In this document: positions 3,364 to 41,584 of the stretch, one piece after another | Position numbering within the stretch: position 1 is the stretch's first letter | How the letters are laid out: every line of letters starts with the position of its first letter | Virus record (IMG/VR): IMGVR_UViG_3300044568_003163 | Coordinates: 62,001-126,000 of that record | Length of the DNA stretch: 64,000 bases | Reading direction: 5' to 3' (one strand) | Made by a program: the position numbers and the translations under genes | Notes under the pieces: generated by a model | What the model was told of the DNA's origin: nothing | The model's input: only the letters and a program-made list of their open reading frames with translations | Database searches by the model: none

Positions 3364-3374
3364 ATGTATAAAAC

Positions 3375-3700: not shown

Positions 3701-3705
3701 ATTTG

Positions 3706-4247: not shown

Positions 4248-4251
4248 ATTT

Positions 4252-4464
4252 TTAAGCTTCTTCAGAGACAAGTCCTAAAACTTCTTCTCTGTAAATTTTA
4301 TTCAATTCACTTACTTCAATATCGATATTCGTTTGTGGATATCGGTGAAGTAAAATCTTAACTAATCTGATTCGTTTCTCAGCCAAATCTTGATTAAAGT
4401 CCATTTCAATCATTGCATCACTTAAATGAGATTGAATTGCGATTGATAATTTGATAGTTTCCAT
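4252..4464 (-). CDS. hypothetical protein
   Basis: ORF directly after a class I promoter. Confidence 0.65.
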   Translation of the reverse strand: METIKLSIAIQSHLSDAMIEMDFNQDLAEKRIRLVKILLHRYPQTNIDIEVSELNKIYREEVLGLVSEEA

Positions 4465-4488
4465 AATGTGATTGTTTAATTTTAATAA

Positions 4489-4546
4489 GTAAAACTAATC
4501 AATTTAATTGACATATGGAAATTATTTTTCAAAAAGTTATTAACAA
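4489..4546 (-). promoter_or_regulatory. class I promoter cassette
   Basis: Box at 4536; offset 46. Confidence 0.65.
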
Positions 4547-4558
4547 TTTTAAAATAAA

Positions 4559-4732
4559 AAGTTTGTCACCGGCACAGATTGGTGAATACCCAAGTACAAC
4601 CGAATGTACCCGATACCTTACTAACAAAATGAACGGATCTGTGTTTCCTGTATGCGGCAAGTGACCTCCTTCCTTGCTTGTGTTTCCGTATCGATGTGTG
4701 CGGCAACATACCATTTTGAGTTCAACAAACTT
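4559..4732 (-). ncRNA. candidate ~175-nt structured ncRNA
   Basis: AAGTTTGT/ACAAACTT closing stem; GC-richer than flanks; follows tRNA-fMet. Confidence 0.4.
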
Positions 4733-4736
4733 CTTG

Positions 4737-4809
4737 TAGCGGGAGCAGGACTCGAACCTGCGACCTTTGGGTTATGAGCCCACTGAGCTACCAACTGCTC
4801 TATCCCGCA
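4737..4809 (-). tRNA. tRNA-fMet(CAT)
   Basis: GGG-CTCATAA-CCC; unpaired 1:72. Confidence 0.85.
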
Positions 4810-4835
4810 ATATACCTTTTAAGTAGAACCATCAA

Positions 4836-5027
4836 CTATATTTCTGTTGATGATTCTAATTGTCTTAATTTTAAACCTTCTTCAATTGTTTGAATGATGT
4901 CCTCAATTATTTGAGCTCGCGTAACATCAAAGTTACCATTCATTCCATTCAAATCTTTTGCATCAATTGCAATAGATCCTACTGACTTACCGTCTTTCTG
5001 TAATTCAATTACTAATGTATCAAACAT
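4836..5027 (-). CDS. hypothetical protein
   Basis: ORF track; class II-like promoter at 5050-5077. Confidence 0.6.
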   Translation of the reverse strand: MFDTLVIELQKDGKSVGSIAIDAKDLNGMNGNFDVTRAQIIEDIIQTIEEGLKLRQLESSTEI

Positions 5028-5092
5028 AATATAGCTTTTTATTTAATTGTTTTATGCAATTTGAAATAAATTGTTTCTCTTCTTATTAACAT

Positions 5093-5551
5093 CTATCTAC
5101 AGATTCTATCAGCTACATATGAAGCCGAGCATGCATCTGGTTTACATCTAGCGTTATAACCTAATGATTCTACATAACCTAAAGCAGAACGCAGAATTGA
5201 ATTAGATTGATACTTAGGGTCTGGATTAAAATCCAAATCAATAAATGCAGGTTTTTCAATATCATTAGCTTCAAGCCATTGAGCTAATTCAACTGAATCT
5301 TCTACCTCTTTCCAAAGTCTAGTAAATCTATCTAAGATTCTAGGAATTGATTTACGAGAGTAGATAACGTGACCTCCTCGATTACCGTAATGTAAAACAA
5401 TAACCATTGCGTAAATTGTATTTCTTCCAATATTTTGCGAATCTGAACCGATATACATTTTGATGTCTTTACCAGTTGCGAGTTTGTCCTTTAAATAAGG
5501 AATTAAGTCAATTACTTGACCGTTTGTTAACGATTGAAATTTCCGGTCCAT
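5093..5551 (-). CDS. RNase H-like protein, YkuK/DUF458 family
   Basis: IGSDSQ, RLWKEVEDS, IDLDFN and ADR motifs. Confidence 0.8.
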   Translation of the reverse strand: MDRKFQSLTNGQVIDLIPYLKDKLATGKDIKMYIGSDSQNIGRNTIYAMVIVLHYGNRGGHVIYSRKSIPRILDRFTRLWKEVEDSVELAQWLEANDIEKPAFIDLDFNPDPKYQSNSILRSALGYVESLGYNARCKPDACSASYVADRICR

Positions 5552-5571
5552 GATTATTAAATTTATGTTAG

Positions 5572-5642
5572 AGGCGAGTATAGGATTCGAACCTATGTAA
5601 CTGATTTTGCAGACCAGCGCCTAACCGCTCGGCCAACTCGCC
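5572..5642 (-). tRNA. tRNA-Cys(GCA)
   Basis: CTGGT-CTGCAAA-ATCAG; U73. Confidence 0.9.
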
Positions 5643-5647
5643 ATTTG

Positions 5648-5719
5648 TGACTCTAGAGAGACTCGAACTCCCATCTCCTGATCCGTAGTCAAGTGTTCTA
5701 TCCATTGAACTATAGAGCC
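5648..5719 (-). tRNA. tRNA-Arg(ACG)
   Basis: CTTGA-CTACGGA-TCAGG. Confidence 0.9.
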
Positions 5720-5728
5720 ATTATTTTG

Positions 5729-5801
5729 TCGGGAAGACAGGACTCGAACCTGCGGCCTCATGCTCCCAAAGCACGCGATCTACCAACTGATCTACTTCCC
5801 G
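5729..5801 (-). tRNA. tRNA-Pro(TGG)
   Basis: CGTGC-TTTGGGA-GCATG. Confidence 0.9.
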
Positions 5802-5848
5802 TGGCAGAGAGGCTTTTGAAGTGCCCTGCTAGTTCATCTTTTAATTTG

Positions 5849-5922
5849 TCGAATAGACAGGAATCGAACCTGCTAACTGATACGTCCAAGGTACCCGTGC
5901 TTAAAACCTTAGTCACTACTCG
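5849..5922 (-). tRNA. tRNA-Pro(TGG), divergent
   Basis: GGTAC-CTTGGAC-GTATC; atypical D arm. Confidence 0.7.
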
Positions 5923-5931
5923 TTTAAAAAC

Positions 5932-5967
5932 AAAAAAGCCTGAATCGGTTGAATGATTCAGGCTTTT
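5932..5967 (-). terminator. attenuator terminator 2
   Basis: AAAAGCCTGAATC...GATTCAGGCTTTTTT just upstream of tRNA-Pro. Confidence 0.85.
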
Positions 5968-5988
5968 ATATGATGATGTTACTTTATA

Positions 5989-6084
5989 TCATTCAAAAAC
6001 CTGCATACCATTCTCACATGCCTCAGGACGAGGGCATTCTACTGTTAACTGCGATGTTGTTAGTATGTGTGAAAGTATTAACAT
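5989..6084 (-). CDS. putative attenuator leader peptide 2 (MLILSHILTTSQLTVECPRPEACENGMQVFE)
   Basis: Lies between promoter and terminator; E-C-P-R-P-E-A-C-E core. Confidence 0.7.
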   Translation of the reverse strand: MLILSHILTTSQLTVECPRPEACENGMQVFE

Positions 6085-6139
6085 TTTAATTTTTATTAGC
6101 AAAGACTCTTTATCTTTGTTTAGTTCTTTTATATATCTT

Positions 6140-6167
6140 TTATATGTTCCGTTATTGCGGAAGTTTC
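6140..6167 (-). promoter_or_regulatory. class II promoter GAAAC-N16-CATATAA
   Basis: Exact motif. Confidence 0.7.
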
Positions 6168-6316
6168 AAAATTATTTTATTCTTTTCTATTTGTGCTTTA
6201 ATCTTAGCAATCTTTTCTGGACTAGGATTTCTATCTATCGTATACGAAACACCCATCTTGTCCATGTAATCGTAAAGAAGTTGCATATCTTCATTAGTAG
6301 TTTTAGTTGTTTTCAT
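6152..6316 (-). CDS. 54-aa hypothetical protein (not in ORF track)
   Basis: MKTTKTTNEDMQLLYDYMDKMGVSYTIDRNPSPEKIAKIK... Confidence 0.55.
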   Translation of the reverse strand: MKTTKTTNEDMQLLYDYMDKMGVSYTIDRNPSPEKIAKIKAQIEKNKIILKLPQ

Positions 6317-6328
6317 AATAACTATTTG

Positions 6329-6402
6329 AGCGGATATTCGGATTCGAACCGAAACTTCAGACTTGGAAGGCCCACGTGCTAGCCGTTAAACACCATACCC
6401 GC
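6329..6402 (-). tRNA. tRNA-Gly(TCC)
   Basis: TGGGC-CTTCCAA-GTCTG. Confidence 0.85.
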
Positions 6403-6412
6403 ATTTTGTTTG

Positions 6413-6485
6413 AGCAATAAATCAGATTCGAACTGACGACCTCTACCTTGGCAAGGTAATGCTCTACCAACTGAGCTATTATTGC
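6413..6485 (-). tRNA. tRNA-Gly(GCC)
   Basis: TTACC-TTGCCAA-GGTAG. Confidence 0.9.
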
Positions 6486-6552
6486 ATTTGAAGGACTTGC
6501 ACCTTCTGGACATGGTTTGTTTCGCCTAAGTCGCCATGTCAACAGACCCGAG

Positions 6553-6624
6553 AGGGCAGAGTGAGATTCGAACTCACGACCAGTTGATTAACAGTCAACT
6601 GCTCTACCGCTGAGCTATCCACCC
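6553..6624 (-). tRNA. tRNA-Asn(GTT)
   Basis: GTTGA-CTGTTAA-TCAAC. Confidence 0.9.
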
Positions 6625-6630
6625 TTATTG

Positions 6631-6741
6631 CAGGAATGTAAGGAATCGAACCTTAGCATCTTCCGAGACAGGGAGTAATTTATGCAGAATACAATCTTCG
6701 CAGATTGAGTTTTAAGCGTGCTACCATTACACCACATTCCT
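6631..6741 (-). ncRNA. tRNA-like RNA with ~60-nt replacement of the anticodon domain
   Basis: Perfect acceptor, D and T arms; internal CAATCT-GCGA-AGATTG hairpin. Confidence 0.7.
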
Positions 6742-6749
6742 GTATTTTG

Positions 6750-6866
6750 TGGGCTCATATGGGCTCGAACCATAATCTCTTCCTAATGACATCCTACCAT
6801 ACTAAAAAGGAATCGAACCTTAGACTCATTATCGAGAAAGCGCTTTGCCAATTAAGCTAATCGCCC
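6750..6866 (-). ncRNA. tRNA-like RNA with a second T-loop/D-loop inside the anticodon domain
   Basis: TAATGA/TCATTA stem encloses AAGGTTCGATTCCTT and AGTATGGTAG. Confidence 0.65.
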
Positions 6867-6872
6867 ATGTAG

Positions 6873-7004
6873 TGAAGAATCCTAGACTCGAACTAGGAAT
6901 GTCAATTAAGACGCCGGTTTTACATCCTTTAAATTGCTGAATAAACACTTTGCACAGTGTTTGCCTTTTTGGACCGGAGCGTTTACCAATTCCGCCAATT
7001 CTTC
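6873..7004 (-). ncRNA. class II tRNA body with ~54-nt anticodon loop
   Basis: CCGGT/ACCGG stem encloses a long loop ending TGTAAA; variable arm present. Confidence 0.7.
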
Positions 7005-7011
7005 ATTATTG

Positions 7012-7083
7012 TTCTCCCGCTGGGAGTCGAACCCAGCCTCATAGATTAAAAGTCTATTGCCCACACCAGTCTGCTACGAGAGA
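7012..7083 (-). tRNA. tRNA-Lys(TTT)
   Basis: ATAGA-CTTTTAA-TCTAT. Confidence 0.85.
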
Positions 7084-7169
7084 TTGTAAAGTTTTCTATT
7101 GCCAACCTCTCAACAGTGTAGAGTATTGACCTATCTATGTTTTCGCTTCATGTTCATTATATTATTTAG

Positions 7170-7243
7170 TGGCCAAGCCTGGACTCGAACCAGGGACCTT
7201 CGCATTATGAGTGCGCCGCTCTAACCAACTGAGCTACATGGCC
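7170..7243 (-). tRNA. tRNA(CAT), probably Ile2 (lysidine type)
   Basis: Loop CTCATAA; GGCC acceptor resembles Ile2 tRNAs. Confidence 0.75.
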
Positions 7244-7359
7244 AAAAATGTAGGGTTATCCGGTACCTACACTGATTAATGACAATCAGACCATCGTTCA
7301 CCACCTGTAAGAGCCTAACGATAGATACTGTACTTGCTTACACTCAAGTATCCGCTGGG

Positions 7360-7433
7360 TAGCGAGGACCGGGATCGAACCGGCGACCTTTGGTTTATGA
7401 ATCCAATGTTACTACCAACTGAACTACCTCGCC
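7360..7433 (-). tRNA. tRNA-Met(CAT), elongator
   Basis: Loop TTCATAA; GGCG acceptor. Confidence 0.8.
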
Positions 7434-7472
7434 AAATTGTAAGTTTTGAATGGACTTACAACCATTGATAGA

Positions 7473-7703
7473 TTATTGGTGATGAGGAATATACTTTCCG
7501 TTCTTAACTCTAACTGCCAGTTTGGTCACGTTAAAATTCCAACAATCAAATGTACTTAATGCAGATCTTTGTTTTGCAAGACTAATGGCTTGCTTTTCTG
7601 CTTTTTCTCGACCTTCTTCCGTTGTTTCGACGAAAAAAGTGGGAGCCTGAACACCAGTCTTACTGGTAGGAACTACTCTCCAAATTCTCAAATTAGTAAT
7701 CAT
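7473..7703 (-). CDS. hypothetical protein
   Basis: ORF track. Confidence 0.6.
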   Translation of the reverse strand: MITNLRIWRVVPTSKTGVQAPTFFVETTEEGREKAEKQAISLAKQRSALSTFDCWNFNVTKLAVRVKNGKYIPHHQ

Positions 7704-7783
7704 AAGTTTTAGCTAAGCTAGACCTATGAGGAATTGTACGATTTTGTTGACATTTGATTTATATTTTTTTATTATATGTTCGA

Positions 7784-8230
7784 TTAAGCCAGAGATTCAA
7801 TAACCTCTTTTACTAATTTTGTATCGGCAAGACCTGGAAATTTCTTAACGAAAGCACCCATAGTCATACCTATTAATTTTTGTTTGTTTAATTCTAAAAC
7901 AGAACCGAGTAAAACATTAACTTCAGTTTCAATTTCAGCTCTAGTCATTTGCTTTGGCAAGTACTTTTCAATAACACCTAATTCATTAGCTTCAGATTCC
8001 ACTAAATCGAATCGACCAGCTTTTGTAAATTCTTCAATAGATTGTCTACGTTGTTTGATTGTAGAAATTACTGCATTTAGAACTAACTCATCAGTAAGTG
8101 GACCAGCATGCTTTGCCTTTTCAGCATCTTGGATTTTTGCCTTTAATCCACTTAATGCATTCTTCGCAATCGCGTTTTTCTCTTTGAATGCTACTATATA
8201 GTCAGCATTGATTGTTTCTCTTAAATTCAT
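7784..8230 (-). CDS. GatB/YqeY domain protein
   Basis: KQRRQSIEEF..AGRFDL..E..E..VIEKYLPKQM signature. Confidence 0.9.
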   Translation of the reverse strand: MNLRETINADYIVAFKEKNAIAKNALSGLKAKIQDAEKAKHAGPLTDELVLNAVISTIKQRRQSIEEFTKAGRFDLVESEANELGVIEKYLPKQMTRAEIETEVNVLLGSVLELNKQKLIGMTMGAFVKKFPGLADTKLVKEVIESLA

Positions 8231-8246
8231 CTTTACTAATTTTTAG

Positions 8247-8327
8247 TGGGCAACAGTGGACTCGAACCACTCCCGTGAGGACCAGATTTACAGTCTGGCT
8301 GCCGTATCCGAACGACTTTTGCGGCCC
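8247..8327 (-). tRNA. tRNA-Tyr(GTA)
   Basis: CCAGA-CTGTAAA-TCTGG; variable arm; atypical D arm. Confidence 0.8.
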
Positions 8328-8336
8328 ATTATATTG

Positions 8337-8410
8337 TGACTCCTCTGGGACTCGAACCCAGGACTCCCTCATTAAAAGTGAGGTGCTCTAGCCGACTGAG
8401 CTAAGAAGTC
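8337..8410 (-). tRNA. tRNA-Lys(TTT)
   Basis: CCTCA-CTTTTAA-TGAGG. Confidence 0.9.
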
Positions 8411-8420
8411 ATTGTAATAG

Positions 8421-8494
8421 CAGTCCTAACGGAATTCGAATCCGCAATCTCTTCCGTGACAGGGAAGCGTCATACGCCAATATGCTGTAGGACT
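8421..8494 (-). tRNA. tRNA-Asp(GTC)
   Basis: CTTCC-CTGTCAC-GGAAG. Confidence 0.8.
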
Positions 8495-8581
8495 ATATAA
8501 AAATTATTTAGTTTAAGCTCCTTTAAACCATGTAATTTCAGGGAGCTATTTGAGCTTATGCATGGAACTAAATAATAATTG

Positions 8582-8655
8582 CCGAGATGACGGGACTCGA
8601 ACCCGTGACCTTCGCCGTGACAGGGCGACATTGTAACCAACTCTACTACACCTCG
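8582..8655 (-). tRNA. tRNA-Asp(GTC)
   Basis: TCGCC-CTGTCAC-GGCGA. Confidence 0.85.
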
Positions 8656-8714
8656 ATTTCTAATTTCACGCTCACACTATGCAGTTCTATAAATTAGTAA
8701 CAGTCTCATCTGGG

Positions 8715-8788
8715 CTCTCCTGACTGGATTCGAACCAGTAACCCTCACCTTAACAGGGTGTCGCTCTAACCGTTGGAGCTACAGGAGA
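8715..8788 (-). tRNA. tRNA-Asn(GTT)
   Basis: CACC-CTGTTAA-GGTG. Confidence 0.85.
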
Positions 8789-8811
8789 ATATTTGATGTT
8801 TTAATTATAAG

Positions 8812-8869
8812 ACAAATATAAACAATGTCATTGACATATGAAAATATTTAATCAAATAGTTATTAACAA
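8812..8869 (-). promoter_or_regulatory. class I promoter cassette inside the tRNA array
   Basis: TATATTTG at 8813-8820, box at 8859; offset 46. Confidence 0.75.
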
Positions 8870-8873
8870 TTTG

Positions 8874-8945
8874 TGGAGCTACCGGGATTCGAACCCGGAA
8901 TAACAGAGTGCAAGTCTATCGTGATGCCAATTTCACTATAGCCCC
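8874..8945 (-). tRNA. tRNA-Ala(TGC)
   Basis: GGGGCTA acceptor with G3:U70; loop CTTGCAC. Confidence 0.9.
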
Positions 8946-8955
8946 ATTAAATTTG

Positions 8956-9030
8956 TAGGAGATGACGGAATCGAACCGACGACCTTTTGCGTGTAAAACA
9001 AACGCTCTAAACCAACTGAGCTAATCTCCT
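8956..9030 (-). tRNA. tRNA-Val(TAC)
   Basis: TTTGT-TTTACAC-GCAAA. Confidence 0.9.
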
Positions 9031-9036
9031 AAATTG

Positions 9037-9110
9037 TAGGTAATATGAGACTCGAACTCATAACCTCCTCGGTATCAGCGAGGTGCTCTAACCAATTGAG
9101 CTAACTACCT
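9037..9110 (-). tRNA. tRNA-Ile(GAT)
   Basis: CCTCG-CTGATAC-CGAGG. Confidence 0.9.
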
Positions 9111-9117
9111 GTGGCAG

Positions 9118-9188
9118 CACGAATGGAAGGATTCGAACCTTCATCGACGGTTTTGGAGACCGGCATGCTACCATTGCACCACACTCGT
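9118..9188 (-). tRNA. tRNA-Trp(CCA)
   Basis: CGGT-CTCCAAA-ACCG. Confidence 0.9.
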
Positions 9189-9195
9189 ATTTTAG

Positions 9196-9268
9196 TGGTA
9201 AGGGACGGGATCGAACCGTCATCATCGGATTTTCAGTCCGCTGCATAGACCAACTTTGCTACCTCACC
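9196..9268 (-). tRNA. tRNA-Phe(GAA)
   Basis: CGGA-CTGAAAA-TCCG. Confidence 0.9.
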
Positions 9269-29032: not shown

Positions 29033-29283
29033 GATATTGTATGATAGTCTTGTTCTCTCGGATCTCTAAAATCTCCTTGATTTAGCTTAACAACAAATCC
29101 TCTAGATTCTAATTCTCTCTTCGTCAAGTTATCTAATGAAATAAAAACATTAGCCGACATTTTATTTTCTCTAACTGCAGCTTCAATAAGAGTTTGACAT
29201 TTTTGCAATTGAAGTTTTACCTTTTCTCCTAATACTGCGGTTGCTTTTGTTCTGCACATTTGTGCTGTAAAATTACTGTCCAT
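29026..29283 (-). CDS. hypothetical protein
   Basis: ORF track. Confidence 0.6.
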   Translation of the reverse strand: MDSNFTAQMCRTKATAVLGEKVKLQLQKCQTLIEAAVRENKMSANVFISLDNLTKRELESRGFVVKLNQGDFRDPREQDYHTISW

Positions 29284-30026
29284 TATTTTGCGTGTTTAAA
29301 TGTTGGGTTTAACCAAAGTCCATTAGCAAATATTAATGCTAATAAACCCGGAATTTGATTTTGGTCGATAGAAGTTAACAACTTAATAGTTGCAACGGTA
29401 TCGTGTTTCATCATTTTGAAAAGTTCTTCTCGGATTCTTTCTCCACTAACAGTAGTTCTTAATTTCTCAAGAATTTCTTCTTGTTCCATAGCTTGAAAAA
29501 TTGTGTGATGAATAAGAAATCCTTTAGTGATAGAAAATCTAATAGCTCTTAAGATTCTTAATGGATCGTCCATCATAGTTATCTTAGCATCTAGTGGAGT
29601 TCTTAAGATTTTCATTTCTAAATCTTCTTGACCGTTGAATAAATCGATAATGTTACCATCTACATCTTCAGCCATTGCATTTAGTGTAAAATCTCTTCGC
29701 ATAAGGTCATCTTCAAGAGTACCTAATTCTAGAATAGGTCTTCTAGTTCCTTCCATGTAACCAATTTCTTTTCTGGCCATTACAAAATCAGCATCTAACT
29801 TAGCGAACTTATGATCGGTTGGAAATTTAGCTCGGATAGTAAACATTTCCGGAACAGAAAGAAAGATAGTAAATCCTTGATCAGTCATCCATTTTTCCAT
29901 TTCAGCAAATCCACTTTCTACTGTTTGGTCTAAATTATCGAGTACAAAAGTAAAATCGATATCCTTAGAATTGATTCCTAGGAATGCGTCTCTTACGCAA
30001 CCTCCTACTTTGAATATCTTTGGCAT
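29283..30026 (-). CDS. cca: CCA-adding tRNA nucleotidyltransferase
   Basis: VGGCVRD, DID, RRDFTLNAM, DDPLRILRAIRF, ERI.EE. Confidence 0.9.
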   Translation of the reverse strand: MPKIFKVGGCVRDAFLGINSKDIDFTFVLDNLDQTVESGFAEMEKWMTDQGFTIFLSVPEMFTIRAKFPTDHKFAKLDADFVMARKEIGYMEGTRRPILELGTLEDDLMRRDFTLNAMAEDVDGNIIDLFNGQEDLEMKILRTPLDAKITMMDDPLRILRAIRFSITKGFLIHHTIFQAMEQEEILEKLRTTVSGERIREELFKMMKHDTVATIKLLTSIDQNQIPGLLALIFANGLWLNPTFKHAK

Positions 30027-32896: not shown

Positions 32897-33259
32897 TTAT
32901 GTTATAGGATCTTCAGAAGGAGGAGTTTCTTCGATAGGAGTTTCTTCGATAGGAGTTTCTTCGATAGGAGTTTCTTCGATAGGAGTTTCTTCGATAGGAG
33001 TTTCTTCTATGATTGCTCGAGTTAAATTCAATTGAGCTATCACATAATCTTCGAGTACTGAATCATCCGTACCCCATTGCAAAACTATTTCATGAGGAAT
33101 TATCATAGATCCTTCGAAGGTTTTATCATCACCTATTAATTTCCAAAATACTTCAACAGTATCTGGAAAAAGAGGAAATGAATTAACTGTTACCTCTAGT
33201 GAATCTATATTCCACCCTAAAGGATATGTGAAAGTAGAAATTGGTTGAATATTTGCCAT
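32897..33259 (-). CDS. hypothetical virion-associated protein with (IEETP)n tail
   Basis: ORF track. Confidence 0.6.
   Translation of the reverse strand: MANIQPISTFTYPLGWNIDSLEVTVNSFPLFPDTVEVFWKLIGDDKTFEGSMIIPHEIVLQWGTDDSVLEDYVIAQLNLTRAIIEETPIEETPIEETPIEETPIEETPIEETPPSEDPIT
32921..33010. repeat. 15-bp tandem repeat x6 (AGGAGTTTCTTCGAT)
   Basis: Directly visible; in frame. Confidence 0.95.
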
Positions 33260-33721: not shown

Positions 33722-34879
33722 TTATATTACCCACCAGTTTGCGTTATCTGAAACTAAAGTAATTGATTCATATATTTTGTTTATTACTGCAGTAAGTCCA
33801 TCATCTATCGTTTGAGTAGAAAATGCATCAACAGTAATTGGTGGAGTACCATCTATTTTTTTAATTACTAATGTTGAAGTATTATCAATTGCAGTAGGTA
33901 GATTAACTTGAAAAGCTCCTCCAGAAGTATTACATTTTAAAATAAAGGTTCCTGCAGTTGCACTTATATTATATGTAGTAGATGCAGAATCAATTACATA
34001 ACCGCTAACACCTCCTGTTCCAGCAGGACCGGTAGCACCTTGAGGACCAGTAGCACCAACTGGACCGGTTATACCAATTCCGGTAGCTCCATTAAGACCA
34101 TCGTTTCCAGTAGGTCCAGTAGGTCCATTAAGGCCAGTAGGTCCAGTTTGACCTACTCCAGTAGCACCAGTAATTCCGATAAGACCAGTAGCACCGATAG
34201 GACCTTGAAGTCCAGTAGCACCAGTTTGTCCATTATTACCAGTAGGACCTTGAAGTCCAGTAGCACCAGTAGGACCTTGAAGTCCAGTAGCACCAGTAGG
34301 ACCTTGAAGTCCAGTAGCACCAGTTTGTCCATTATTACCGGTAGAACCTTGAATTCCAGTAGAACCAGTTTGTCCATCGTTTCCAGTAGGACCTATTCCA
34401 CCAGTCATTCCAATAGCTCCAGTTTGTCCATCATTTCCGGTAGCACCTTGAAGGCCATTGTTTCCGGTAGGACCAGTAGCTCCGGCTACACCAGGATTTC
34501 CTGTAGCACCAGTAGCTCCAATTTGACCATCATTTCCTGTAGCACCAGTAAGACCGATTTGACCATCATTTCCAGTAGGACCGGTAGGTCCAGTTACACC
34601 TGCACCGGTTGGACCGATTTGTCCATTATTTCCAGTAGGACCGGTAGGTCCTTGAATTCCAGTAGCTCCGGTTTCACCAGCACCAGTAGAACCAGTAGCA
34701 CCTTTATTTCCGTCTACCCCTGTAGGACCGGTAGCTCCTGTTTGACCTCTACTTGCTTGTAAAGTTATAGGATTACCGAGTCCATCATAATAATTTCCGT
34801 TTCCGTCTGTTTGTAAAAGATTACCAAAAGAGTTTGATACGAACTGATTGGTTAAATCAAAATCTTGATTTTGTGGCAT
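33722..34879 (-). CDS. collagen-like (Gly-X-Y) fibre protein
   Basis: About 245 aa of GPT/GAT/GQT repeats plus a C-terminal domain. Confidence 0.9.
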
Positions 34880-35835: not shown

Positions 35836-36309
35836 TTATTTAGGAGTATCGTATTTTTCGAGAATAGATGTCATCTTTTTTAGTATAGGCTTTTGATTTA
35901 CAGGCACTATAGTTTTCTTAATTTGTACAATAGGTTCAGGTTCTCGAACGCTTCTCAAAACTCGAATAGTATCGTAAGGATTGTCTCTTTCTATTTCGTT
36001 AACTTCGGGTCTTCGTACTAAAGTTCTTTCGACTAGAGTTTGAGGTTTAAGTGAGAGCATACTATCTAAAAGGCGTTTTACTTCTAAAATATCTTTTGTC
36101 TTTTTATTGCTATCATCCATTATTTGATTATTCAATTTTAGTTGATTAGCATAAGTAACCATCATTGAATCATATTGAGTAGATATTGATAAACAATCGT
36201 CAGTTTTAAAATACGAAGTACCTATAGCAGTCATCGAACTAAAGATAACTGCTATGATAAATGCCCATATTCTTTGTTTTGGTGTTAGTGATTTTATAAC
36301 TTCAAACAT
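35836..36309 (-). CDS. N-terminally anchored coiled-coil protein (spanin-like?)
   Basis: One TM plus coiled coil; lysis context. Confidence 0.4.
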   Translation of the reverse strand: MFEVIKSLTPKQRIWAFIIAVIFSSMTAIGTSYFKTDDCLSISTQYDSMMVTYANQLKLNNQIMDDSNKKTKDILEVKRLLDSMLSLKPQTLVERTLVRRPEVNEIERDNPYDTIRVLRSVREPEPIVQIKKTIVPVNQKPILKKMTSILEKYDTPK

Positions 36310-36317
36310 AATTAAAA

Positions 36318-36935
36318 TTATTTGTATGGCGCATATTTAGGTAGGCCCTTAACTCTAACGCAACGTAGAATTTGTTTTCTTTGTTTGCCAGTGGATTCGT
36401 AACTCACATGAACCCAATTTGGATTTATATCATTACCATATTCCCATATAAGCTGGTCAAATTCTAAATTATCTTTAATAAAATCAAAGACCATTTTATT
36501 AGTAATTCCTGTACCTGCAGAATCTTGGTCTAAATCTAAAGCTTCACCAGTACTGTGTTGTGAAGTTAAAGATGCTCCTGGTGTAGCAGCATTTAGGGCT
36601 TTGCTTCTATATCCCGAAGATATTAAAATAGGTTTACCAAAATGTAAACGAATAGGTTCAAAAACCTTTTCGGCTATTAATTTCAAATTAGCCAAATGTT
36701 CAGGAGATGGGGTATTGTCTATTCCAAGGCGTTTTGCTTCACCGGAATTAGTTACTTCGCTAAGCGAAAGGTGTGCACTTAATTTCATAGGATATATTAT
36801 TTTTCTGTCTTCTAATTCTTCCGTTATGATTCGATTCATCATAATTTGAGCATCATCAGGTTTAACACCGGCACGAATTAACATCGATAGTATCTTCATG
36901 CCAAATTCCATTTGGTCATCTGATAATCTTGACAT
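36318..36935 (-). CDS. peptidase M15A (Zn D-Ala-D-Ala type)
   Basis: SSGYRS, SQH..GEALD, WVHVS. Confidence 0.9.
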   Translation of the reverse strand: MSRLSDDQMEFGMKILSMLIRAGVKPDDAQIMMNRIITEELEDRKIIYPMKLSAHLSLSEVTNSGEAKRLGIDNTPSPEHLANLKLIAEKVFEPIRLHFGKPILISSGYRSKALNAATPGASLTSQHSTGEALDLDQDSAGTGITNKMVFDFIKDNLEFDQLIWEYGNDINPNWVHVSYESTGKQRKQILRCVRVKGLPKYAPYK

Positions 36936-36941
36936 CGCTAT

Positions 36942-37517
36942 TTAGCTATTTTTATTCTCGGATGCATATTTTACACCCATAATCGTACCTACGATAGAGA
37001 ATGCGTTTGTGAGTAGAATACCAAACATATTAGACCAAGTCGAACCTATGATTTGAGTGTCTTTACCAGTAAACATTGCAACACTGTACATAATCGTTGT
37101 TATTATTCCAACGCTCATAATTACAACTAAAGCTACTTTGACGATTGTTCCAATTAATTCAGTTTGTGATTTTTTCTGAATAATATCTAAGTCGTTTAAA
37201 GCTGCGTCTTTTGCTACTAATGCCTCAGTTTTAGAATTCTCTGCTTCTTGAAGAGCAATCTTAAGGTCTTCGTTTATACGTATGTTTTCTTCCTCGGATG
37301 CTAATAATTCTCGATTTCTTTCTTGTACTTGTTTAGTAACTTCTAATCGTTTCCTTCTAGCATCTTTGTCCTTTTCTAAAGCCGTTGAAAGATAATCTGA
37401 AAATTCTTTATCACCTTCTTCGGGCTCTATAACTTTAAGTAAGTTACCTTCAATAGCAACTCGTTTAGTCTTTTGAATTTCAAGTAAAAAATCTCGGATT
37501 ACTTTATTTACTTTCAT
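36942..37517 (-). CDS. coiled-coil plus 2-TM membrane protein
   Basis: Two C-terminal TMs; translationally coupled to the receiver gene. Confidence 0.65.
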   Translation of the reverse strand: MKVNKVIRDFLLEIQKTKRVAIEGNLLKVIEPEEGDKEFSDYLSTALEKDKDARRKRLEVTKQVQERNRELLASEEENIRINEDLKIALQEAENSKTEALVAKDAALNDLDIIQKKSQTELIGTIVKVALVVIMSVGIITTIMYSVAMFTGKDTQIIGSTWSNMFGILLTNAFSIVGTIMGVKYASENKNS

Positions 37518-37948
37518 TATTTATAAACTTTGAACGGCGCAGTTCTATTTTTATAACCTTCAAAATCTTTTTTAAATTCCTCTAGTCTAGGTTCGATGTC
37601 GTCAGATTTGATTATCCAGAATTGAGCTCCAGATTTAACGGCTTTTGCTTGTTCTTCTGGCTCATTAGATGATGAGATGATTCCAATAACCACGTTATTA
37701 CCATACTCAAAGTTTATCTTACGAATAAGCTCGATACCATCATACGAAGAACCTATGATATTAAGATCTACGAAAACACATTCAGGTTTTCCTTCAGGAT
37801 CTTTTTGCCAACCTGAAAATAGTTTAGCAGCTTCGTCTGAGCTATCTATAGACTCAAGAGAAAGTGAAATATCTAAAAGACTGCAAGCGTCTTCGAAAAC
37901 TAAGTGAAAAAGACTTTCGTCATCTACTAGTAAAATTGAATCAATCAT
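37517..37948 (-). CDS. stand-alone response regulator receiver
   Basis: LLVDD, FVDLN (phospho-Asp), ISSS, conserved Lys. Confidence 0.9.
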   Translation of the reverse strand: MIDSILLVDDESLFHLVFEDACSLLDISLSLESIDSSDEAAKLFSGWQKDPEGKPECVFVDLNIIGSSYDGIELIRKINFEYGNNVVIGIISSSNEPEEQAKAVKSGAQFWIIKSDDIEPRLEEFKKDFEGYKNRTAPFKVYK

Positions 37949-37960
37949 TTTTGTTTTATG

Positions 37961-39886
37961 TTATTTTAATTTGATTTTCATTTGTGTGCCTATCTCTGGC
38001 AGTTTATTACATTTAATGGTAAAGCCATGTTCACTTAAAATTGCAATACATATATTAAGGCCTAATCCGGTTCCTGATTCTGCTTGTCCTTCTTTCCTTA
38101 CATACGGTTTAGATAGATAATCGAAATCTGCTTGACTTAATCCTCTACCGTTATCTTCAATAAAGAGAGTATCTTCAACTCGATAAATTTTAACAAATTT
38201 ACTATTACTGTCATTGTATTTCAATCCATTACGAATAAGATTATCAATTGATGTACAAAATAAGGCTTCATTAACATCCAATTCTCCTAAGTCTTCTAAA
38301 ATTACTTGAGGTCGATATGCAGTTGCAGAAAGATAATCCTCTAATATAAGCTTAAGATTGCAATTAACTCGATCAAGTACAACATCCTTCTTTACCAAAT
38401 TTGTAAATTCATAAACTCCTTTATAAACTTTTTGAGTGTGTCGCAGACCTTCTTTAATCATCTTAAGAGGTGCTTCAATCTTCAACTCTTTTATTTGTTC
38501 TTCCGTGAGTCTACGTTCTAACGAAGATAAACCTCGAGGCATATATGTGTTAATTCCACTATGCATATCATGTCGAAGAATTTTAGCAGCATGTTCAAGA
38601 TAAGTGTTTTTCTTTTCAATCTCTATCTGCTGATTATAGCTTTGAGTAACATCAGTAGCAATTTTCATTATTCGATAAGGTTTACCATCAATACCAATAA
38701 CCGGATTATAAGTTGCTTGTAGATAAATTAAATTTCCATCTTTTTTCTTTCTGATAATTTCTCCACTAAAGAATTTTCCTGTTCGTAGAGTTTCCCAAAA
38801 TTTTTGATATTCATTTGATTCGACAAATTCATCCTCTACGAATATGCTATGATGTTTACCTACGATTTCTTCGAATTTATCGTATCCCATAGTATTTAAG
38901 AAAAGTGAATTAGCAAATATTATATTACCTCCTAAGTCGAATTCAATAACCGCATTAGATTGATTAATTGCAGTCATTCTATTATGTATTTCGTTCTCTT
39001 TGTTTTTTAATTGAGTAACATCTTGTCGGATAGACATAAATCCTAATATGGTTCCGTCATCGTCGAAATTGCACTTTATAAAAGTATCTACATAATACAA
39101 TGAGCCATTTTTTGCTCGGTTTGTACAGATAGCATTCCAAATTTTCTTTTCTTTGACTACTGTCCTATACATATCAGACCAAAATTCCTTAGGATGTTCA
39201 CCTGAATTTACAACATTATGGTCAAGGCCTATCACTTCATCTATCGTATATCCAGAAATATCACAAAACTTTTGATTTACATATGTTATCTTTCCTTTAG
39301 AATCAGCCATTGAAATGATTGCTGATGTATCGAGAAATTTTTCTAGTTCTATCATTTGACTCGATAACTTTTTAGATTCTTTAACAGAATAAGCAAATGA
39401 ATACAGAGACGAAAGTATTTGAGCAAAATGAATTTCCTCAGTTTTCCATATTCTAGGGGATAGACTTTCAATACAAATAACCCCAATCAACGATCCACTA
39501 TACCAAATTGGTACATCTAACATCGATTTAACACCCAGAGGTTTTAGATAACCTTCAAGAAAACACGATGTGGCAGGATGATTTTCTGCATCATTAGCAA
39601 CAATGATTGGATTTTCTTCCAGTGATAAAAAATATGATTCGAAATCTTTTTTATGTAAAATAATATCTTGATAAAAGGCATCTTCTAATTTTATATAAAG
39701 TTGTTGAAGGATGATAGAATCTCGGTCCTCGTTAAACAACCATATAGATGTTCGATCAGCTGAAACACTATCTACAACTTCCTTAACCACCAATTTAGCT
39801 CCTTCCATAATATTACCTTTATAAAATAATTCATTTGAAGATTGATGTACTAATACCTCAGTTAAAATTTCTGAGTATGATTTCAT
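37961..39886 (-). CDS. cytoplasmic GAF-PAS-PAS sensor histidine kinase
   Basis: GAF (SMLDVPI), two PAS/PAC, H-box RHDM, NLIRNGLKY, EDNGRG, GTGLGL. Confidence 0.9.
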   Translation of the reverse strand: MKSYSEILTEVLVHQSSNELFYKGNIMEGAKLVVKEVVDSVSADRTSIWLFNEDRDSIILQQLYIKLEDAFYQDIILHKKDFESYFLSLEENPIIVANDAENHPATSCFLEGYLKPLGVKSMLDVPIWYSGSLIGVICIESLSPRIWKTEEIHFAQILSSLYSFAYSVKESKKLSSQMIELEKFLDTSAIISMADSKGKITYVNQKFCDISGYTIDEVIGLDHNVVNSGEHPKEFWSDMYRTVVKEKKIWNAICTNRAKNGSLYYVDTFIKCNFDDDGTILGFMSIRQDVTQLKNKENEIHNRMTAINQSNAVIEFDLGGNIIFANSLFLNTMGYDKFEEIVGKHHSIFVEDEFVESNEYQKFWETLRTGKFFSGEIIRKKKDGNLIYLQATYNPVIGIDGKPYRIMKIATDVTQSYNQQIEIEKKNTYLEHAAKILRHDMHSGINTYMPRGLSSLERRLTEEQIKELKIEAPLKMIKEGLRHTQKVYKGVYEFTNLVKKDVVLDRVNCNLKLILEDYLSATAYRPQVILEDLGELDVNEALFCTSIDNLIRNGLKYNDSNSKFVKIYRVEDTLFIEDNGRGLSQADFDYLSKPYVRKEGQAESGTGLGLNICIAILSEHGFTIKCNKLPEIGTQMKIKLK

Positions 39887-39898
39887 ATTTTGATATTT

Positions 39899-40711
39899 TT
39901 ATTTTAGTAGGGAGTAATATTCCTTGAAATGTTTTAGCCTATCAGCTAATCCTATGGTACCACCGTTTACTCTTTTAGTTACTGCAGTAACTGTTGCATC
40001 GTCCGCTCCTTTGTCGCATATGGACCATAGTTTATTTGAATCAAAAAAGAATGCTGCAGAAGCTAATGGATATTTAGTCGCAACTAAATCTGGAGTAGCA
40101 ATACAATCTTCACCGATAAATTTAGTAAAGTTAGTGTAGTTAGATTTTCCTGTTAATTGAATGAAACCTCTTCCTCTGAATTTGAATCCTTCACGAGAAG
40201 CCTCATCACCATTACCCATTCTAGATGCATAAACTCTAGAAGCAATTTTCTCTGGTTGTCTTGCATATAAATCAGACATATTTCCAGGAAAGTACTTTCC
40301 AAATATTTTCTTCAAACCATCTGCCGAGTAATTTACATTTTCAGTAACTGCCTTAAATCCACCTGACTCATGGCCACATTGAGCTAAGAAATGAGCTAAT
40401 CTTAATGGAGTAGTGATGTTGAATTTTTTGGCAGTATCAGGAATTTGAGCAATAACTGAATCTGGTACGTGACCTTTTAATTTGTCTAATTTAAAAGGAG
40501 ATGTAGGAATTGGTGTAGACGATGTAGTAATTGCTTGGATTTTACTCCAAGTAGCATCACCAACAAATCCATCTGCAGTTAATCCATTCTTAGATTGAAA
40601 GTCTTTAACCGCCTTTTCTGTGCCTGGACCGAAGTCACCATCAGCACTCAAACCCAAAGCTTTTTGTAAAGCTATTACGTCTGGACTAGTAGAACCTATT
40701 TTAAGTAGCAT
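39899..40711 (-). CDS. endolysin: PG-binding domain + GH19
   Basis: DGDFGPGT..AV..FQ; FLAQCGHESGG, RGRGFIQLTG, VNGG..G..DR. Confidence 0.9.
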   Translation of the reverse strand: MLLKIGSTSPDVIALQKALGLSADGDFGPGTEKAVKDFQSKNGLTADGFVGDATWSKIQAITTSSTPIPTSPFKLDKLKGHVPDSVIAQIPDTAKKFNITTPLRLAHFLAQCGHESGGFKAVTENVNYSADGLKKIFGKYFPGNMSDLYARQPEKIASRVYASRMGNGDEASREGFKFRGRGFIQLTGKSNYTNFTKFIGEDCIATPDLVATKYPLASAAFFFDSNKLWSICDKGADDATVTAVTKRVNGGTIGLADRLKHFKEYYSLLK

Positions 40712-40896: not shown

Positions 40897-41244
40897 TTAT
40901 TTTAGAAAAATTTGTATTGCCAGAATGACAAACGAAAGAAAAACGCAAAGACCATTTTTGAAGTCTAGGCCTTGTTTGAGGATGAGGAGAGTAAGAATAA
41001 AGAAGATGATTGTTCCAGTGATTGTAGGAATAATTCTCGAAGGCCATATCTGCGAATCAAATCCTTCGTATAAATGACCTACTCCTAGAATGAATAAGTA
41101 AGAAACCGTAGTTCCAAAAACTATTGATATGAGAAGACGATAATCGTTGACTTCAGGCCAGATGAATTGTGAATTAGTTTGAAACCAAATTAAGACTTGG
41201 CCTATTGCACAATATAAAATTCCTATAAGGATATGTTTATTCAT
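40897..41244 (-). CDS. 4-TM small membrane protein (SMR/EamA-like)
   Basis: Four hydrophobic helices in 115 aa. Confidence 0.55.
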   Translation of the reverse strand: MNKHILIGILYCAIGQVLIWFQTNSQFIWPEVNDYRLLISIVFGTTVSYLFILGVGHLYEGFDSQIWPSRIIPTITGTIIFFILTLLILKQGLDFKNGLCVFLSFVILAIQIFLK

Positions 41245-41359
41245 CGTTTTCTAAAAGTTTCAATTATAGAGACGATTTCTCCCAATACCACGATTATAAA
41301 TATTGCTATGCAAATAGATACTCCTTGATGATTTTCTATTGAGGTTAATATTTCTTCCA

Positions 41360-41584
41360 TTATTCAGGATTTATGATTTCTACTATTTTCCATCTATCAG
41401 TTTTCTGACAGATTACAATTTGTTTTTGTGCTAAAATTTTACCTAACCAAATTGATTTTTCTTCGTTAGCTAGATAAGTCTTAACTTCTTCTAGAGTTTT
41501 GAATGTCTTATGGGTTTTTAATAACACGGTAAGACCTGAACTATAAGAATCATAAGCGTATAATTTGAATTTAGTTTCTTCCAT
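41360..41584 (-). CDS. hypothetical protein
   Basis: ORF track. Confidence 0.55.
   Translation of the reverse strand: MEETKFKLYAYDSYSSGLTVLLKTHKTFKTLEEVKTYLANEEKSIWLGKILAQKQIVICQKTDRWKIVEIINPE

Follow-up and report, generated by a model that had tools for sequence, protein, structure and literature searches.

Gene content of the locus

We analysed a window of 64,000 nucleotides (positions 62,001 to 126,000 of IMG/VR record IMGVR_UViG_3300044568_003163) from the 294-kb genome of an uncultured lake-water phage. An ORF check placed six genes on the minus strand between positions 35,836 and 40,711, and two small membrane ORFs lie directly upstream of the first of them.

41241-41360, minus strand: 39-aa ORF with one TM segment (sequence read, hydropathy)
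40897-41244, minus strand: g115, 115 aa, about four TM segments (hydropathy)
39899-40711, minus strand: GH19 endolysin, 270 aa (Pfam, PHROG)
37961-39886, minus strand: soluble sensor histidine kinase, 641 aa (Pfam, motifs, PDB matches)
37517-37948, minus strand: stand-alone receiver, 143 aa (Pfam, alignment A2)
36942-37517, minus strand: TM191, 191 aa, proposed output/effector (alignment A1, AF2 model, hydropathy)
36318-36935, minus strand: Peptidase_M15_3 protein, 205 aa (Pfam, PHROG)
35836-36309, minus strand: 157-aa protein with one N-terminal TM segment (hydropathy)

Read 5' to 3' in gene order, the six genes are separated by 12, 12, -1 (a TAATG overlap), 6 and 8 nt. A preliminary description of this DNA had proposed a six-gene, lysis-like order with gaps of 13 bp or less and intact catalytic motifs. 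Both statements agree with our data, as all genes share one strand, no gap exceeds 12 nt, and the GH19 glutamates, the kinase boxes, the receiver quintet and the M15 metal motif are all present.

Wall hydrolases and flanking membrane ORFs

The 270-aa endolysin combines PG_binding_1 (50.7 bits) with Glyco_hydro_19 (PF00182, 33.7 bits, cut-off 25.5), matches the endolysin family PHROG 181 (7.5e-67) and displays its catalytic glutamates, E115 and E124, in the expected motifs. Its gene shares 68-70% DNA identity with endolysin genes of Flavobacterium and Cellulophaga phages. Hydropathy analysis of the protein revealed no TM, signal or SAR segment, indicating that this cytoplasmic enzyme can reach the wall only through a membrane lesion. 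The 205-aa protein harbors Peptidase_M15_3 (PF08291, 52.2 bits), matches the endolysin family PHROG 894 (2.2e-26) and contains the H/D/H metal motif (H127, D134, H176). This predicted cell-wall peptidase could be a second endolysin or, since its gene adjoins tail-fibre genes, a virion-associated lysin; in two relatives (L101 and L102) the M15 gene lies between TM191 and the tail-fibre-side genes. The locus does not display a pinholin/SAR-endolysin arrangement, as neither the GH19 nor the M15 protein has a hydrophobic N-terminal segment.

The single N-terminal TM segment of the 157-aa ORF gives it an i-spanin-like architecture by hydropathy. We rejected it as a spanin because no o-spanin or lipoprotein ORF is embedded in it or adjacent to it, and tblastn found homologues only in 100%-identical contigs, so that it is not conserved in relatives.

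The module probably reaches upstream, to the 4-TM and 39-aa ORFs. The g115 protein has no Pfam or PHROG match and is unrelated to Phage_holin_4_1 (hhalign probability 0.2%). Its homologues come after TM191 in four relatives (L077-L080) and after Phage_holin_4_1 in cassettes of the fused type described below. It is likely part of the lysis cassette and possibly a holin-type protein. The 39-aa ORF carries its TM segment at residues 15-33 and overlaps a neighbouring gene at both its start and its stop. Sequence reading and hydropathy make it a possible small lysis-cassette membrane protein, a membership that we regard as tentative.

A soluble kinase and a stand-alone receiver

The kinase contains a GAF domain (residues 31-163), two PAS domains (189-292 and 322-409) and HATPase_c (547-640) according to Pfam, and hydropathy detected no TM segment.

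39796-39398, minus strand: kinase GAF (Pfam)
39322-39011, minus strand: kinase PAS1, closest to FAD-binding redox PAS domains
38923-38660, minus strand: kinase PAS2 (Pfam)
38572-38570, minus strand: putative phospho-acceptor His439 of the kinase (H-box-like motif)
38248-37967, minus strand: kinase HATPase_c (PF02518)
37768-37766, minus strand: phospho-acceptor Asp61 of the receiver (alignment A2)

The ATPase domain scores 43.4 bits and carries an N box at 549, G1 at 578 and G2 at 605. Pfam HisKA was not matched at E 0.01. The H-box-like motif with His439 is conserved and, used as a search pattern, retrieved hundreds of homologues, and the surrounding region aligns to the DHp-CA part of solved kinases (PDB matches KdpD, QseC, CpxA and HK853). 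Related kinases occur at more than 595 viral loci. The closest solved relatives of PAS1 are MmoS (PAS-A, 3.5e-28), Aer (8.2e-17) and NifL (4.3e-11), all FAD-binding redox sensors to which PAS1 is homologous overall. In contrast to the PAS2 type, which is universal and also occurs in cytoplasmic chemoreceptors, PAS1 and GAF are missing from many relatives. Because the sensor is cytoplasmic and PAS1 resembles FAD redox sensors, the signal is presumably the state of the host, possibly its flavin/redox or energy state.

The receiver consists of Response_reg (PF00072, 35.3 bits) and no other domain, followed by a conserved 28-residue C-terminal extension. D9, D10, D61, S92 and K114 are invariant in 37 homologues, whose alignment (A2) has a mean column identity of 81%; identity across the clade is 68-96%. 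Its nearest solved structure is a single-domain regulator of Cytophaga (3ilh). The kinase and receiver genes are adjacent, separated by a median of 5.5 nt across relatives, and they form the only such pair that we found in the 294-kb genome. A second HATPase_c match in this genome belongs to a GyrB-like topoisomerase and not to another kinase.

TM191 is a conserved two-helix membrane protein

Hydropathy places the TM segments of TM191 at residues 121-139 and 164-182, and the AF2 model (pLDDT 83.8) displays a long helix (37-150) followed by a second one (155-189). The topology is N-in/C-in.

37517-37341, minus strand: TM191 N-terminal input domain, residues 1-59
37340-37158, minus strand: TM191 heptad-registered stalk, residues 60-120
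37157-36969, minus strand: TM191 TM hairpin, residues 121-183

TM2 is nearly invariant (alignment A1) and the periplasmic loop is also extremely conserved. TM2 displays a small-xxx-small zipper (G166, T170, S174 and T178, plus G177xxxG181). Between its anchors the stalk measures 60, 67, 81, 88 or 95 residues, and all 173 sequences share one heptad phase; by this pattern the stalk is of the signalling type. TM191 matches neither Pfam nor PHROG, and its 58 homologues gave no consistent family match, so that by these searches it belongs to no described holin family. The TM191 family has thousands of metagenomic members and 116 representatives in 1.84 billion proteins; none were found in cultured phages and only eight in MAG contigs, which look misbinned. 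Together the sequence comparisons indicate that the membrane protein TM191 is both new and very conserved.

The trio is conserved, and sensor domains fuse to its membrane part

About 155 IMG/VR loci keep the order and strand of kinase, receiver and TM191, while the genes on either side differ. Among 82 unique receiver-TM191 pairs, 65 (79%) have a receiver stop that overlaps the TM191 start, and in 81 the two lie at most 8 nt apart, supporting the prediction that the three genes form a conserved, translationally coupled unit. Synteny in other phages was one of the checks that the preliminary description had named, and a common bacterial cassette unlinked to lysis genes was one of the findings that would have spoken against it. 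We found no bacterial homologues of the cassette, so that the trio is not a bacterial cassette, and by its distribution the TM191 family is phage-only.

Other phages encode the same membrane part in one protein with a sensor. These fused-type proteins include PAS-PAS-stalk-hairpin forms (L166, 385 aa; L168, 371 aa), PAS-stalk-hairpin forms of about 250 aa and a GAF-stalk-hairpin form of 360 aa (P0247). Residues 60/81-191 of TM191 are homologous to the GAF- and PAS-fused proteins, whose hairpin part is 57-59% identical to that of TM191 (E 5e-42 and 2e-59). Likewise, the fused GAF is 60% identical to the GAF of the present kinase (E 2e-76), and the fused PAS domains are of the PAS2 type. The distance from PAS to anchor is constant in 180 of 181 fused proteins, and in AF2 models one unbroken helix joins PAS2 or the N-domain to TM1. 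None of five fused-type genomes, of which four are at least 90% complete, encodes a receiver, and each of the four split-type genomes examined encodes exactly one. That GAF and PAS domains are fused to the stalk-hairpin where kinase and receiver are lacking argues that TM191 is the output of the sensor. In two other loci (L133 and L104) TM191 is retained in the same synteny and kinase and receiver are absent, suggesting that the effector can stand alone.

The kinase and receiver could instead act on host pathways, as a phosphate sink or by cross-talk with host regulators, with TM191 merely a co-inherited neighbour. Single-domain receivers can serve as phosphate sinks, and the 68-96% receiver identity is expected of a protein fitting a conserved partner. 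We nevertheless hold this to be improbable, given the fusion of sensor domains to the stalk-hairpin in phages devoid of kinase and receiver, the stop-start overlap in 79% of pairs and the lack of bacterial homologues of the cassette.

The trio is linked to lysis genes

Among the unique loci, 46 of 67 of the split type and 30 of 35 of the fused type have a peptidoglycan hydrolase gene no more than 3 kb away; these loci are phylogenetically related, so that the counts are not independent events. Chance would give about 6%, a rough expectation from the two hydrolase genes in the 294 kb of this genome. Five hydrolase families (GH19, M15, GH24, Amidase_2 and phrog_3000-type) are interchangeable, and neither the position nor the strand of the hydrolase gene is constant. 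We detected Phage_holin_4_1 in 28 of 159 loci of the split type and in 22 of 80 of the fused type, and the TM module of relatives lies beside Phage_holin_4_1 and/or c5/c7-type 2-TM genes. Complete cassettes, with a holin or small 2-TM protein, an i-/o-spanin-like pair and an endolysin, were found in L166, L187 and L250, the spanin-like pair of L250 consisting of a TM/coiled-coil protein and a lipoprotein. In L187 the fused gene starts at the last base of an upstream ORF encoding a 145-aa 3-TM protein, which we read as holin-like from its sequence. Together the data support the view that the trio occurs among lysis genes far oftener than chance predicts.

The same neighbourhoods could arise from a general clustering of membrane and late genes around a sensor-controlled effector whose job is not lysis: it could exclude superinfecting phages, modulate proton-motive force or ion flux during infection, or anchor a phage structure at the membrane. 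TM191 lacks a holin-family match, and the very strong conservation of TM2 and the periplasmic loop suggests that the partner is fixed, possibly a host membrane protein that is itself conserved. In addition, no wall hydrolase was recognised within 3 kb at 21 of the 67 split-type loci, and one lineage (L058, L104 and L133) is located among unrelated genes. However, inheritance alone would hardly yield linkage to five hydrolase families in varied orientations, to holins and to spanin-like pairs, and the junction in L187 joins the fused gene to a putatively holin-like ORF. Thus, we consider a non-lysis function unlikely.

A proposed sensor-gated lysis-control module

We propose, with a probability of about 60%, that the locus encodes a sensor-gated lysis-control module in which a cytoplasmic sensor gates a membrane lysis effector by phosphorelay. 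The soluble GAF-PAS-PAS kinase would sense a cytoplasmic cue and phosphorylate the receiver. The receiver, produced in 1:1 coupling with TM191, would contact the TM191 N-terminal domain, and the signal would pass along the rigid, heptad-registered coiled-coil stalk to the two-helix hairpin. The zipper face of the hairpin would control membrane permeabilisation and so set when the GH19 and M15 hydrolases reach the wall. Both the phosphotransfer and the receiver-TM191 binding are presumed steps.

What TM191 does to the membrane, and in which direction, is likewise what we infer. The preliminary description had named phosphorelay control of a holin-like protein. Its control part gains from the conserved trio, the lysis linkage and the sensor-hairpin fusions, and its holin label fares less well, as TM191 matches no holin family. 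TM191 could itself be the holin of this phage, with the phosphorelay setting the trigger time, as first suggested. It is a two-TM protein encoded between the GH19 and M15 genes, as expected of a small membrane protein beside an endolysin, and its 191 aa lie at the upper end of the holin size range. Its N-in/C-in hairpin with a small-xxx-small zipper resembles pore-forming helices. Neither Phage_holin_4_1, nor a c5/c7-type small 2-TM protein, nor any other known holin family was found in the 294-kb genome, and since neither the GH19 nor the M15 protein carries an export signal, a hole is needed. In contrast, two other candidate membrane proteins (g115 and the 39-aa ORF) are encoded directly upstream of the endolysin, and TM191 is conserved far beyond what is usual for holins, which tend to diverge fast. 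Where holins and small 2-TM proteins co-occur with the module, TM191 is not needed as the holin, and the canonical Phage_holin_4_1 beside it makes a regulator or antiholin role at least as likely. Within the overall reading, we therefore tentatively place a regulator or antiholin slightly ahead of a hole-former, which we regard as possible though doubtful.

Since relatives fuse sensor domains directly to the membrane protein, these phages probably sense the condition of the infected cell and time its lysis accordingly.

Relation to known systems

In T4 lysis inhibition (holin T, antiholins RI and RIII), information likewise adjusts lysis timing via accessory proteins whose target is a membrane lysis protein and whose genes lie among or close to the lysis genes. 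However, T4 employs no kinase, receiver, PAS or GAF, has no sequence relation to the present module, and senses superinfection in the periplasm, whereas the sensor described here is cytoplasmic and coupled by phosphorelay or direct fusion. Class II holins such as the pinholin S21 68, with its antiholin S21 71, share with TM191 the two-TM N-in/C-in hairpin with a glycine-zipper-like face and follow the same holin/antiholin logic as we propose. They differ in their length of about 70 aa, SAR endolysin partner and dual-start antiholin, whereas TM191 has a 120-residue cytoplasmic input domain plus stalk and endolysins without a SAR segment; Pfam and PHROG detected no homology between them.

LytSR, which controls lrgAB/cidAB, also links a two-component system to holin/antiholin-like membrane proteins. 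In contrast to the membrane kinase LytS and to LytR, which acts on transcription through a LytTR DNA-binding domain, the present system is phage-encoded, has a soluble kinase and would act by protein-protein control. We rejected LytSR-LrgAB-type control because the receiver has no LytTR output, in line with the absence of a DNA-binding output domain noted in the preliminary description. As in CheY-type regulators, a receiver-only protein with an intact catalytic quintet necessarily delivers its output by protein contact, but here a phage membrane protein would take the place of the flagellar switch as partner, and the nearest solved relatives are of the Rcp/3ilh type rather than CheY. Phage VP882 encodes the PAS receptor VqmA-Phi, a transcription factor on the lysogeny switch that triggers the lytic programme. 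There too a chemical cue, read by a PAS sensor that the phage itself encodes, allows the killing of the host to be timed, whereas here the sensor would be wired to a lysis-cassette membrane protein of an apparently lytic jumbo phage.

A sensor kinase and a membrane hairpin encoded between lysis enzymes

All six ORFs claimed by the preliminary description were found on reading the sequence, with the short spacing it had reported (12, 12, -1, 6 and 8 nt between successive ORFs).

35836-40711, minus strand: six-ORF cluster of GH19 endolysin, kinase, receiver, TM191, M15 peptidase and a 157-aa ORF
36942-37517, minus strand: TM191, a 191-aa protein with N-domain, stalk and a hairpin of two transmembrane (TM) segments
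40897-41244, minus strand: g115, a 115-aa protein with about four TM segments
41241-41360, minus strand: 39-aa single-TM ORF, its stop/start overlapping that of g115, the two lying just upstream of the endolysin

Pfam and PHROGs bear out the domain calls: PG_binding_1 and GH19 in the endolysin, M15_3 in the peptidase, and GAF, two PAS domains (PAS1 and PAS2) and HATPase_c in the kinase, which is soluble as stated, having no TM segment. The catalytic motifs are likewise intact, comprising the GH19 glutamates, the M15 metal motif, the kinase boxes (H-box His at 439; N, G1 and G2 boxes present) and the receiver quintet D9, D10, D61, S92 and K114, which is invariant among 37 homologues. Pfam HisKA does not match the kinase, but the corresponding region aligns with DHp-CA of kinases of known structure. 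The receiver matches Response_reg only, in agreement with the claim that it lacks a DNA-binding output domain. The 191-aa and 157-aa proteins have no Pfam or PHROG match, and neither the GH19 nor the M15 enzyme carries an export signal. No terminator-like site was found inside the cluster by a promoter/terminator scan that gave counts under the shuffled expectation and is ill-suited to Bacteroidota-type promoters.

The M15 peptidase is possibly a virion lysin. No o-spanin is embedded in or adjoins the 157-aa ORF, and a spanin role for this unconserved protein is unsupported. Elsewhere in the 294-kb genome we found neither another kinase nor another receiver. The one further HATPase_c protein (C1:214843-216672, outside the window; equal to L161:151-1977) was rejected as a second kinase, since it is GyrB/topoisomerase II-like and has DNA_gyraseB and Toprim domains. 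Family searches of limited sensitivity, in which the PF00072 route missed the receiver, detected in this genome no SLT, Amidase_2, M23 or GH24 enzyme and no holin of clusters c10, c5, c7 or other small-TM clusters. Homologues of g115 come after Phage_holin_4_1 genes in some relatives (the fused-type cassettes described below); g115 was rejected as a divergent Phage_holin_4_1 (hhalign probability 0.2%).

The trio is kept together in related phages

Synteny in other phages had been named as a check. IMG/VR searches returned more than 595 related stretches with the kinase as query and more than 256 with TM191, and 159 loci were examined for gene order by tblastn and ORF clustering. The order and strand of kinase, receiver and TM191 are kept almost without exception, and the genes flanking this trio differ widely. 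Compared with the window proteins, the receivers are 68-96% identical, the TM191 homologues 43-91% and the kinases 51-80%. The sensor part of the kinase is modular: GAF-PAS-PAS as in the window, PAS-PAS, or PAS alone. Of 82 unique pairs, 65 have the stop of the receiver overlapping the start of TM191, and 81 have the two within 8 nt. Such stop/start overlap usually points to coupled, stoichiometric synthesis.

One lineage keeps TM191, in the synteny of the related locus L058, and lacks kinase and receiver:

L133:5574-6230: TM191 homologue with N-domain, without kinase or receiver
L104:3150-3806: TM191 homologue with N-domain, without kinase or receiver

The 177-kb record of this lineage, which is 74% complete, yielded no receiver. 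Since TM191 persists here alone, it has a function that does not depend on kinase and receiver, and the two-component system seems to be a control added onto it.

Several loci (L014-L017, L035, L091, L105, L162) have two tandem kinase paralogues upstream of receiver and TM191, which suggests two sensory inputs into one receiver; the ORF between the kinases (cluster c35) encodes about 200 aa with a signal peptide and a coiled coil. In marine relatives (L136, L138, L143, L144, L155, L159) a c92 gene is inserted between receiver and TM191; its product is about 162 aa long and combines two TM segments with a coiled coil. One freshwater lineage carries near the trio two genes classified by reading alone: a DnaK/Hsp70-like protein of about 620 aa a few genes away (c16, e.g. 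L064) and a protein of about 277 aa resembling an amino-acid ligase or tRNA synthetase (c18, e.g. L030).

The preliminary description had also raised the possibility that the trio is a common bacterial cassette. This was rejected, as 185,579 species genomes gave 8 matches. All eight contigs come from MAGs, of eight different phyla, and have phage-type neighbours, as is typical of misbinned phage DNA.

Sensor domains are fused directly to the hairpin in other phages

Four of the eight MAG contigs encode, without kinase domain or receiver, a single ORF in which two PAS domains are joined to the stalk and TM191 hairpin, and the same PAS-PAS-stalk-hairpin ORF occurs in 281 IMG/VR stretches. In the fused protein of locus L166 the PAS domains are of the PAS2 type, and its C-terminal part is 59% identical to TM191 residues 81-190 (E 5e-42). 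An exhaustive profile search with the hairpin module yielded only 116 representatives among 1.84 billion proteins, always with the module C-terminal; they include one-PAS forms (~250-300 aa) and a GAF form, P0247 (360 aa). The GAF domain of P0247 is 60% identical to that of the window kinase (E 2e-76), and the rest is 57% identical to TM191 residues 60-191, with an insertion of 35 residues (five heptads). P0247 reads as if all that lies between the kinase GAF and the TM191 stalk had been deleted.

Five fused-type phage genomes contain no receiver; four of these are at least 90% complete, and terminal repeats are present in two. Split-type control genomes, in which the three genes are separate, contain exactly one in four of four. 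The distance from PAS to the sequence anchor is fixed in 180 of 181 fused proteins. AlphaFold2 (AF2) predicts an unbroken helix from the last PAS strand into TM1, with a mean pLDDT of 68 (80-90 in the PAS domains, lower in the helical part).

An alignment of 58 diverse TM191 homologues displays a conserved N-domain (about residues 1-60), a stalk of variable length and a highly conserved hairpin. Between two bracketing anchors the stalk measures 60, 67, 81, 88 or 95 residues, differing by whole heptads in 173 of 173 sequences, and TM1-loop spacing is constant. Conservation of register is a property of signal-carrying coiled coils, such as those of chemoreceptors and sensor kinases. In the AF2 model of TM191 (mean pLDDT 83.8), a helix that starts at residue 37 runs unbroken into TM1, and residues 155-189 form the return helix. 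Because there is no signal peptide, the topology is N-in/C-in; the N-domain and stalk are therefore cytoplasmic and reachable by the receiver. Complex prediction of the receiver with TM191 residues 1-125 scored 0.35 (control 0.19), which we weighed neither for nor against binding.

Lysis genes recur beside both types of locus

Hydrolases of several families recur beside the trio in relatives: GH19, M15, GH24 lysozyme (PF00959, 152 bits), PG_binding_1-Amidase_2 and a phrog_3000-type putative hydrolase. Phage_holin_4_1 holins (34.6 and 45.2 bits; cut-off 22.2) and a family of two-TM proteins of about 80 aa, whose clusters c5 and c7 are homologous (hhalign probability 96.9%), also recur there. 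When only matches that cover at least half of the query and only loci with enough flank are counted, 46 of 67 unique split-type loci have a hydrolase within 3 kb of the module, upstream or downstream and on either strand. By gene count, one is found within four genes in 41 of 70 loci and is directly adjacent in 25. The only hydrolase genes of the window genome are the two of this cluster, so the chance expectation is roughly 6%; as the loci are related, the counts are not independent events. The turnover of hydrolase family and position nonetheless argues that the linkage is being maintained.

Fused-type loci have same-strand lysis-type genes in 76 of 80 cases and a hydrolase within 3 kb in 30 of the 35 unique loci with enough flank. 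Two cassettes read in order:

L166: small 2-TM protein, PAS-PAS-hairpin, GH19, Phage_holin_4_1, TM/coiled-coil protein, signal-peptide protein
L250: lipoprotein, GAF-hairpin, c5-type 2-TM protein, TM/coiled-coil protein, lipoprotein, GH19, glucosaminidase

The TM/coiled-coil protein and lipoprotein of L250 resemble an i-/o-spanin pair. In L187 a 145-aa ORF with three TM segments, holin-like by reading of its sequence, ends on the base at which the fused gene starts, and an M15 peptidase follows.

Hole-former or regulator

The sensor domains and the hairpin are, we infer, functionally coupled, with the hairpin as part of the lysis apparatus. The N-domain is the part of TM191 that is replaced in the fusions, and in the window the signal would run from kinase to receiver to this N-domain. 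We put at about one half the probability that aquatic jumbo phages possess an undescribed class of lysis protein, a hairpin acting as holin or antiholin and set post-translationally by a cytoplasmic GAF/PAS sensor, either fused or through kinase and receiver.

The hairpin could itself form the hole. The N-in/C-in topology, endolysins devoid of export signals and the absence of a recognised holin from this genome fit such a role, as does the zipper face of the hairpin: the second TM helix is almost invariant, with two invariant asparagines, a small-xxx-small face (G166, T170, S174, T178) and G177xxxG181. Alternatively it could be a regulator or antiholin, as suggested by the canonical holins and small 2-TM proteins that adjoin its gene in relatives and by the unusually high conservation of TM191.

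The closest relatives of PAS1 are the FAD-binding redox sensors MmoS, Aer and NifL, so that redox or energy state is a plausible candidate for the signal; this is only a lead, and PAS1 and GAF are dispensable, being absent in many relatives.

A new family in a proposed lysis-timing control

Burst size and phage fitness are decided by the timing of lysis, which is known to be controlled by the clock of the holin itself, by dual-start antiholins and by lysis inhibition of the T4/N4 type. To our knowledge, none of these uses classical signal-transduction domains. T4 lysis inhibition, the S21 pinholin/antiholin and bacterial LytSR-LrgAB each have one aspect in common with the module and differ from it in parts and wiring. 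Literature searches on phage-encoded kinases, PAS/antiholin and lysis timing turned up no account of a phage lysis cassette that carries a two-component system or a PAS/GAF sensor. A survey of jumbo phages reported only a divergent cRec domain, unrelated to kinases (PMC7824862). We rate the module as probable lysis-timing control, a known kind, built on a new protein family without a Pfam entry.

TM191 and its 58 homologues gave no consistent match in Pfam or PHROGs, and the automatic Atlas label 'GLE1-like' found no support in these scans; source names for the family are generic or misleading automatic labels only. The family includes at least 7,894 clusters at 90% identity in the TM191 length range and 3,028 in the range 212-674 aa, which overlaps the first, so the counts are not additive. 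By tblastn, GenBank phages contain no TM191 homologue, the family being absent from the cultured phages there, and match the kinase and the fused protein at the PAS level only.

If the proposed role is right, the lysis clock would read the infected cell's metabolic, redox or energy state, and phages could condition the final step of infection on the host's internal state. This would be the first two-component system known to govern phage lysis through a protein-protein output, and a rare receiver domain with a membrane protein as output. With thousands of family members in lakes and seas, such control would matter for the release of carbon by viruses in aquatic systems. The sensor-gated effector, which comes in three wiring variants (phosphorelay, PAS fusion, GAF fusion), could provide synthetic biology with a compact modular switch from ligand to membrane permeabilisation. 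Because fusions occur in nature, a few constructs would suffice for a direct test of the hypothesis.

Genome setting and probable host

The window spans bases 62001-126000 of a single viral contig of 294,034 bp with 32.8% GC and an estimated completeness of 91% (CheckV). Nearly all genes of the window are on the minus strand. Near-identical DNA comes from lake-water metagenomes of many studies, and no RNA run is among the sequencing runs with this region. The host is probably a freshwater member of the Bacteroidota, because the closest DNA matches of the GH19 gene are endolysin genes of Flavobacterium and Cellulophaga phages (68-70% identity).

1592-9268: 35 tRNA genes
2044-2116, minus strand: tRNA with a four-base anticodon (agcg) inside the tRNA array (ARAGORN)
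29283-30026, minus strand: tRNA nucleotidyltransferase, CCA-adding type (PHROG 24229, 1.5e-64)
32897-33259, minus strand: 120-aa ORF with seven tandem repeats of five residues at its end, rich in Pro, Ile, Glu and Thr
33722-34879, minus strand: 385-aa ORF neighbouring the repeat ORF, a collagen-like G-X-Y tail-fibre protein (PHROG 6320, 1.2e-68)

The tRNA at 2044-2116 could be frameshift-suppressor-like or an artefact of prediction, and a phage-encoded tRNA nucleotidyltransferase fits the large tRNA set.
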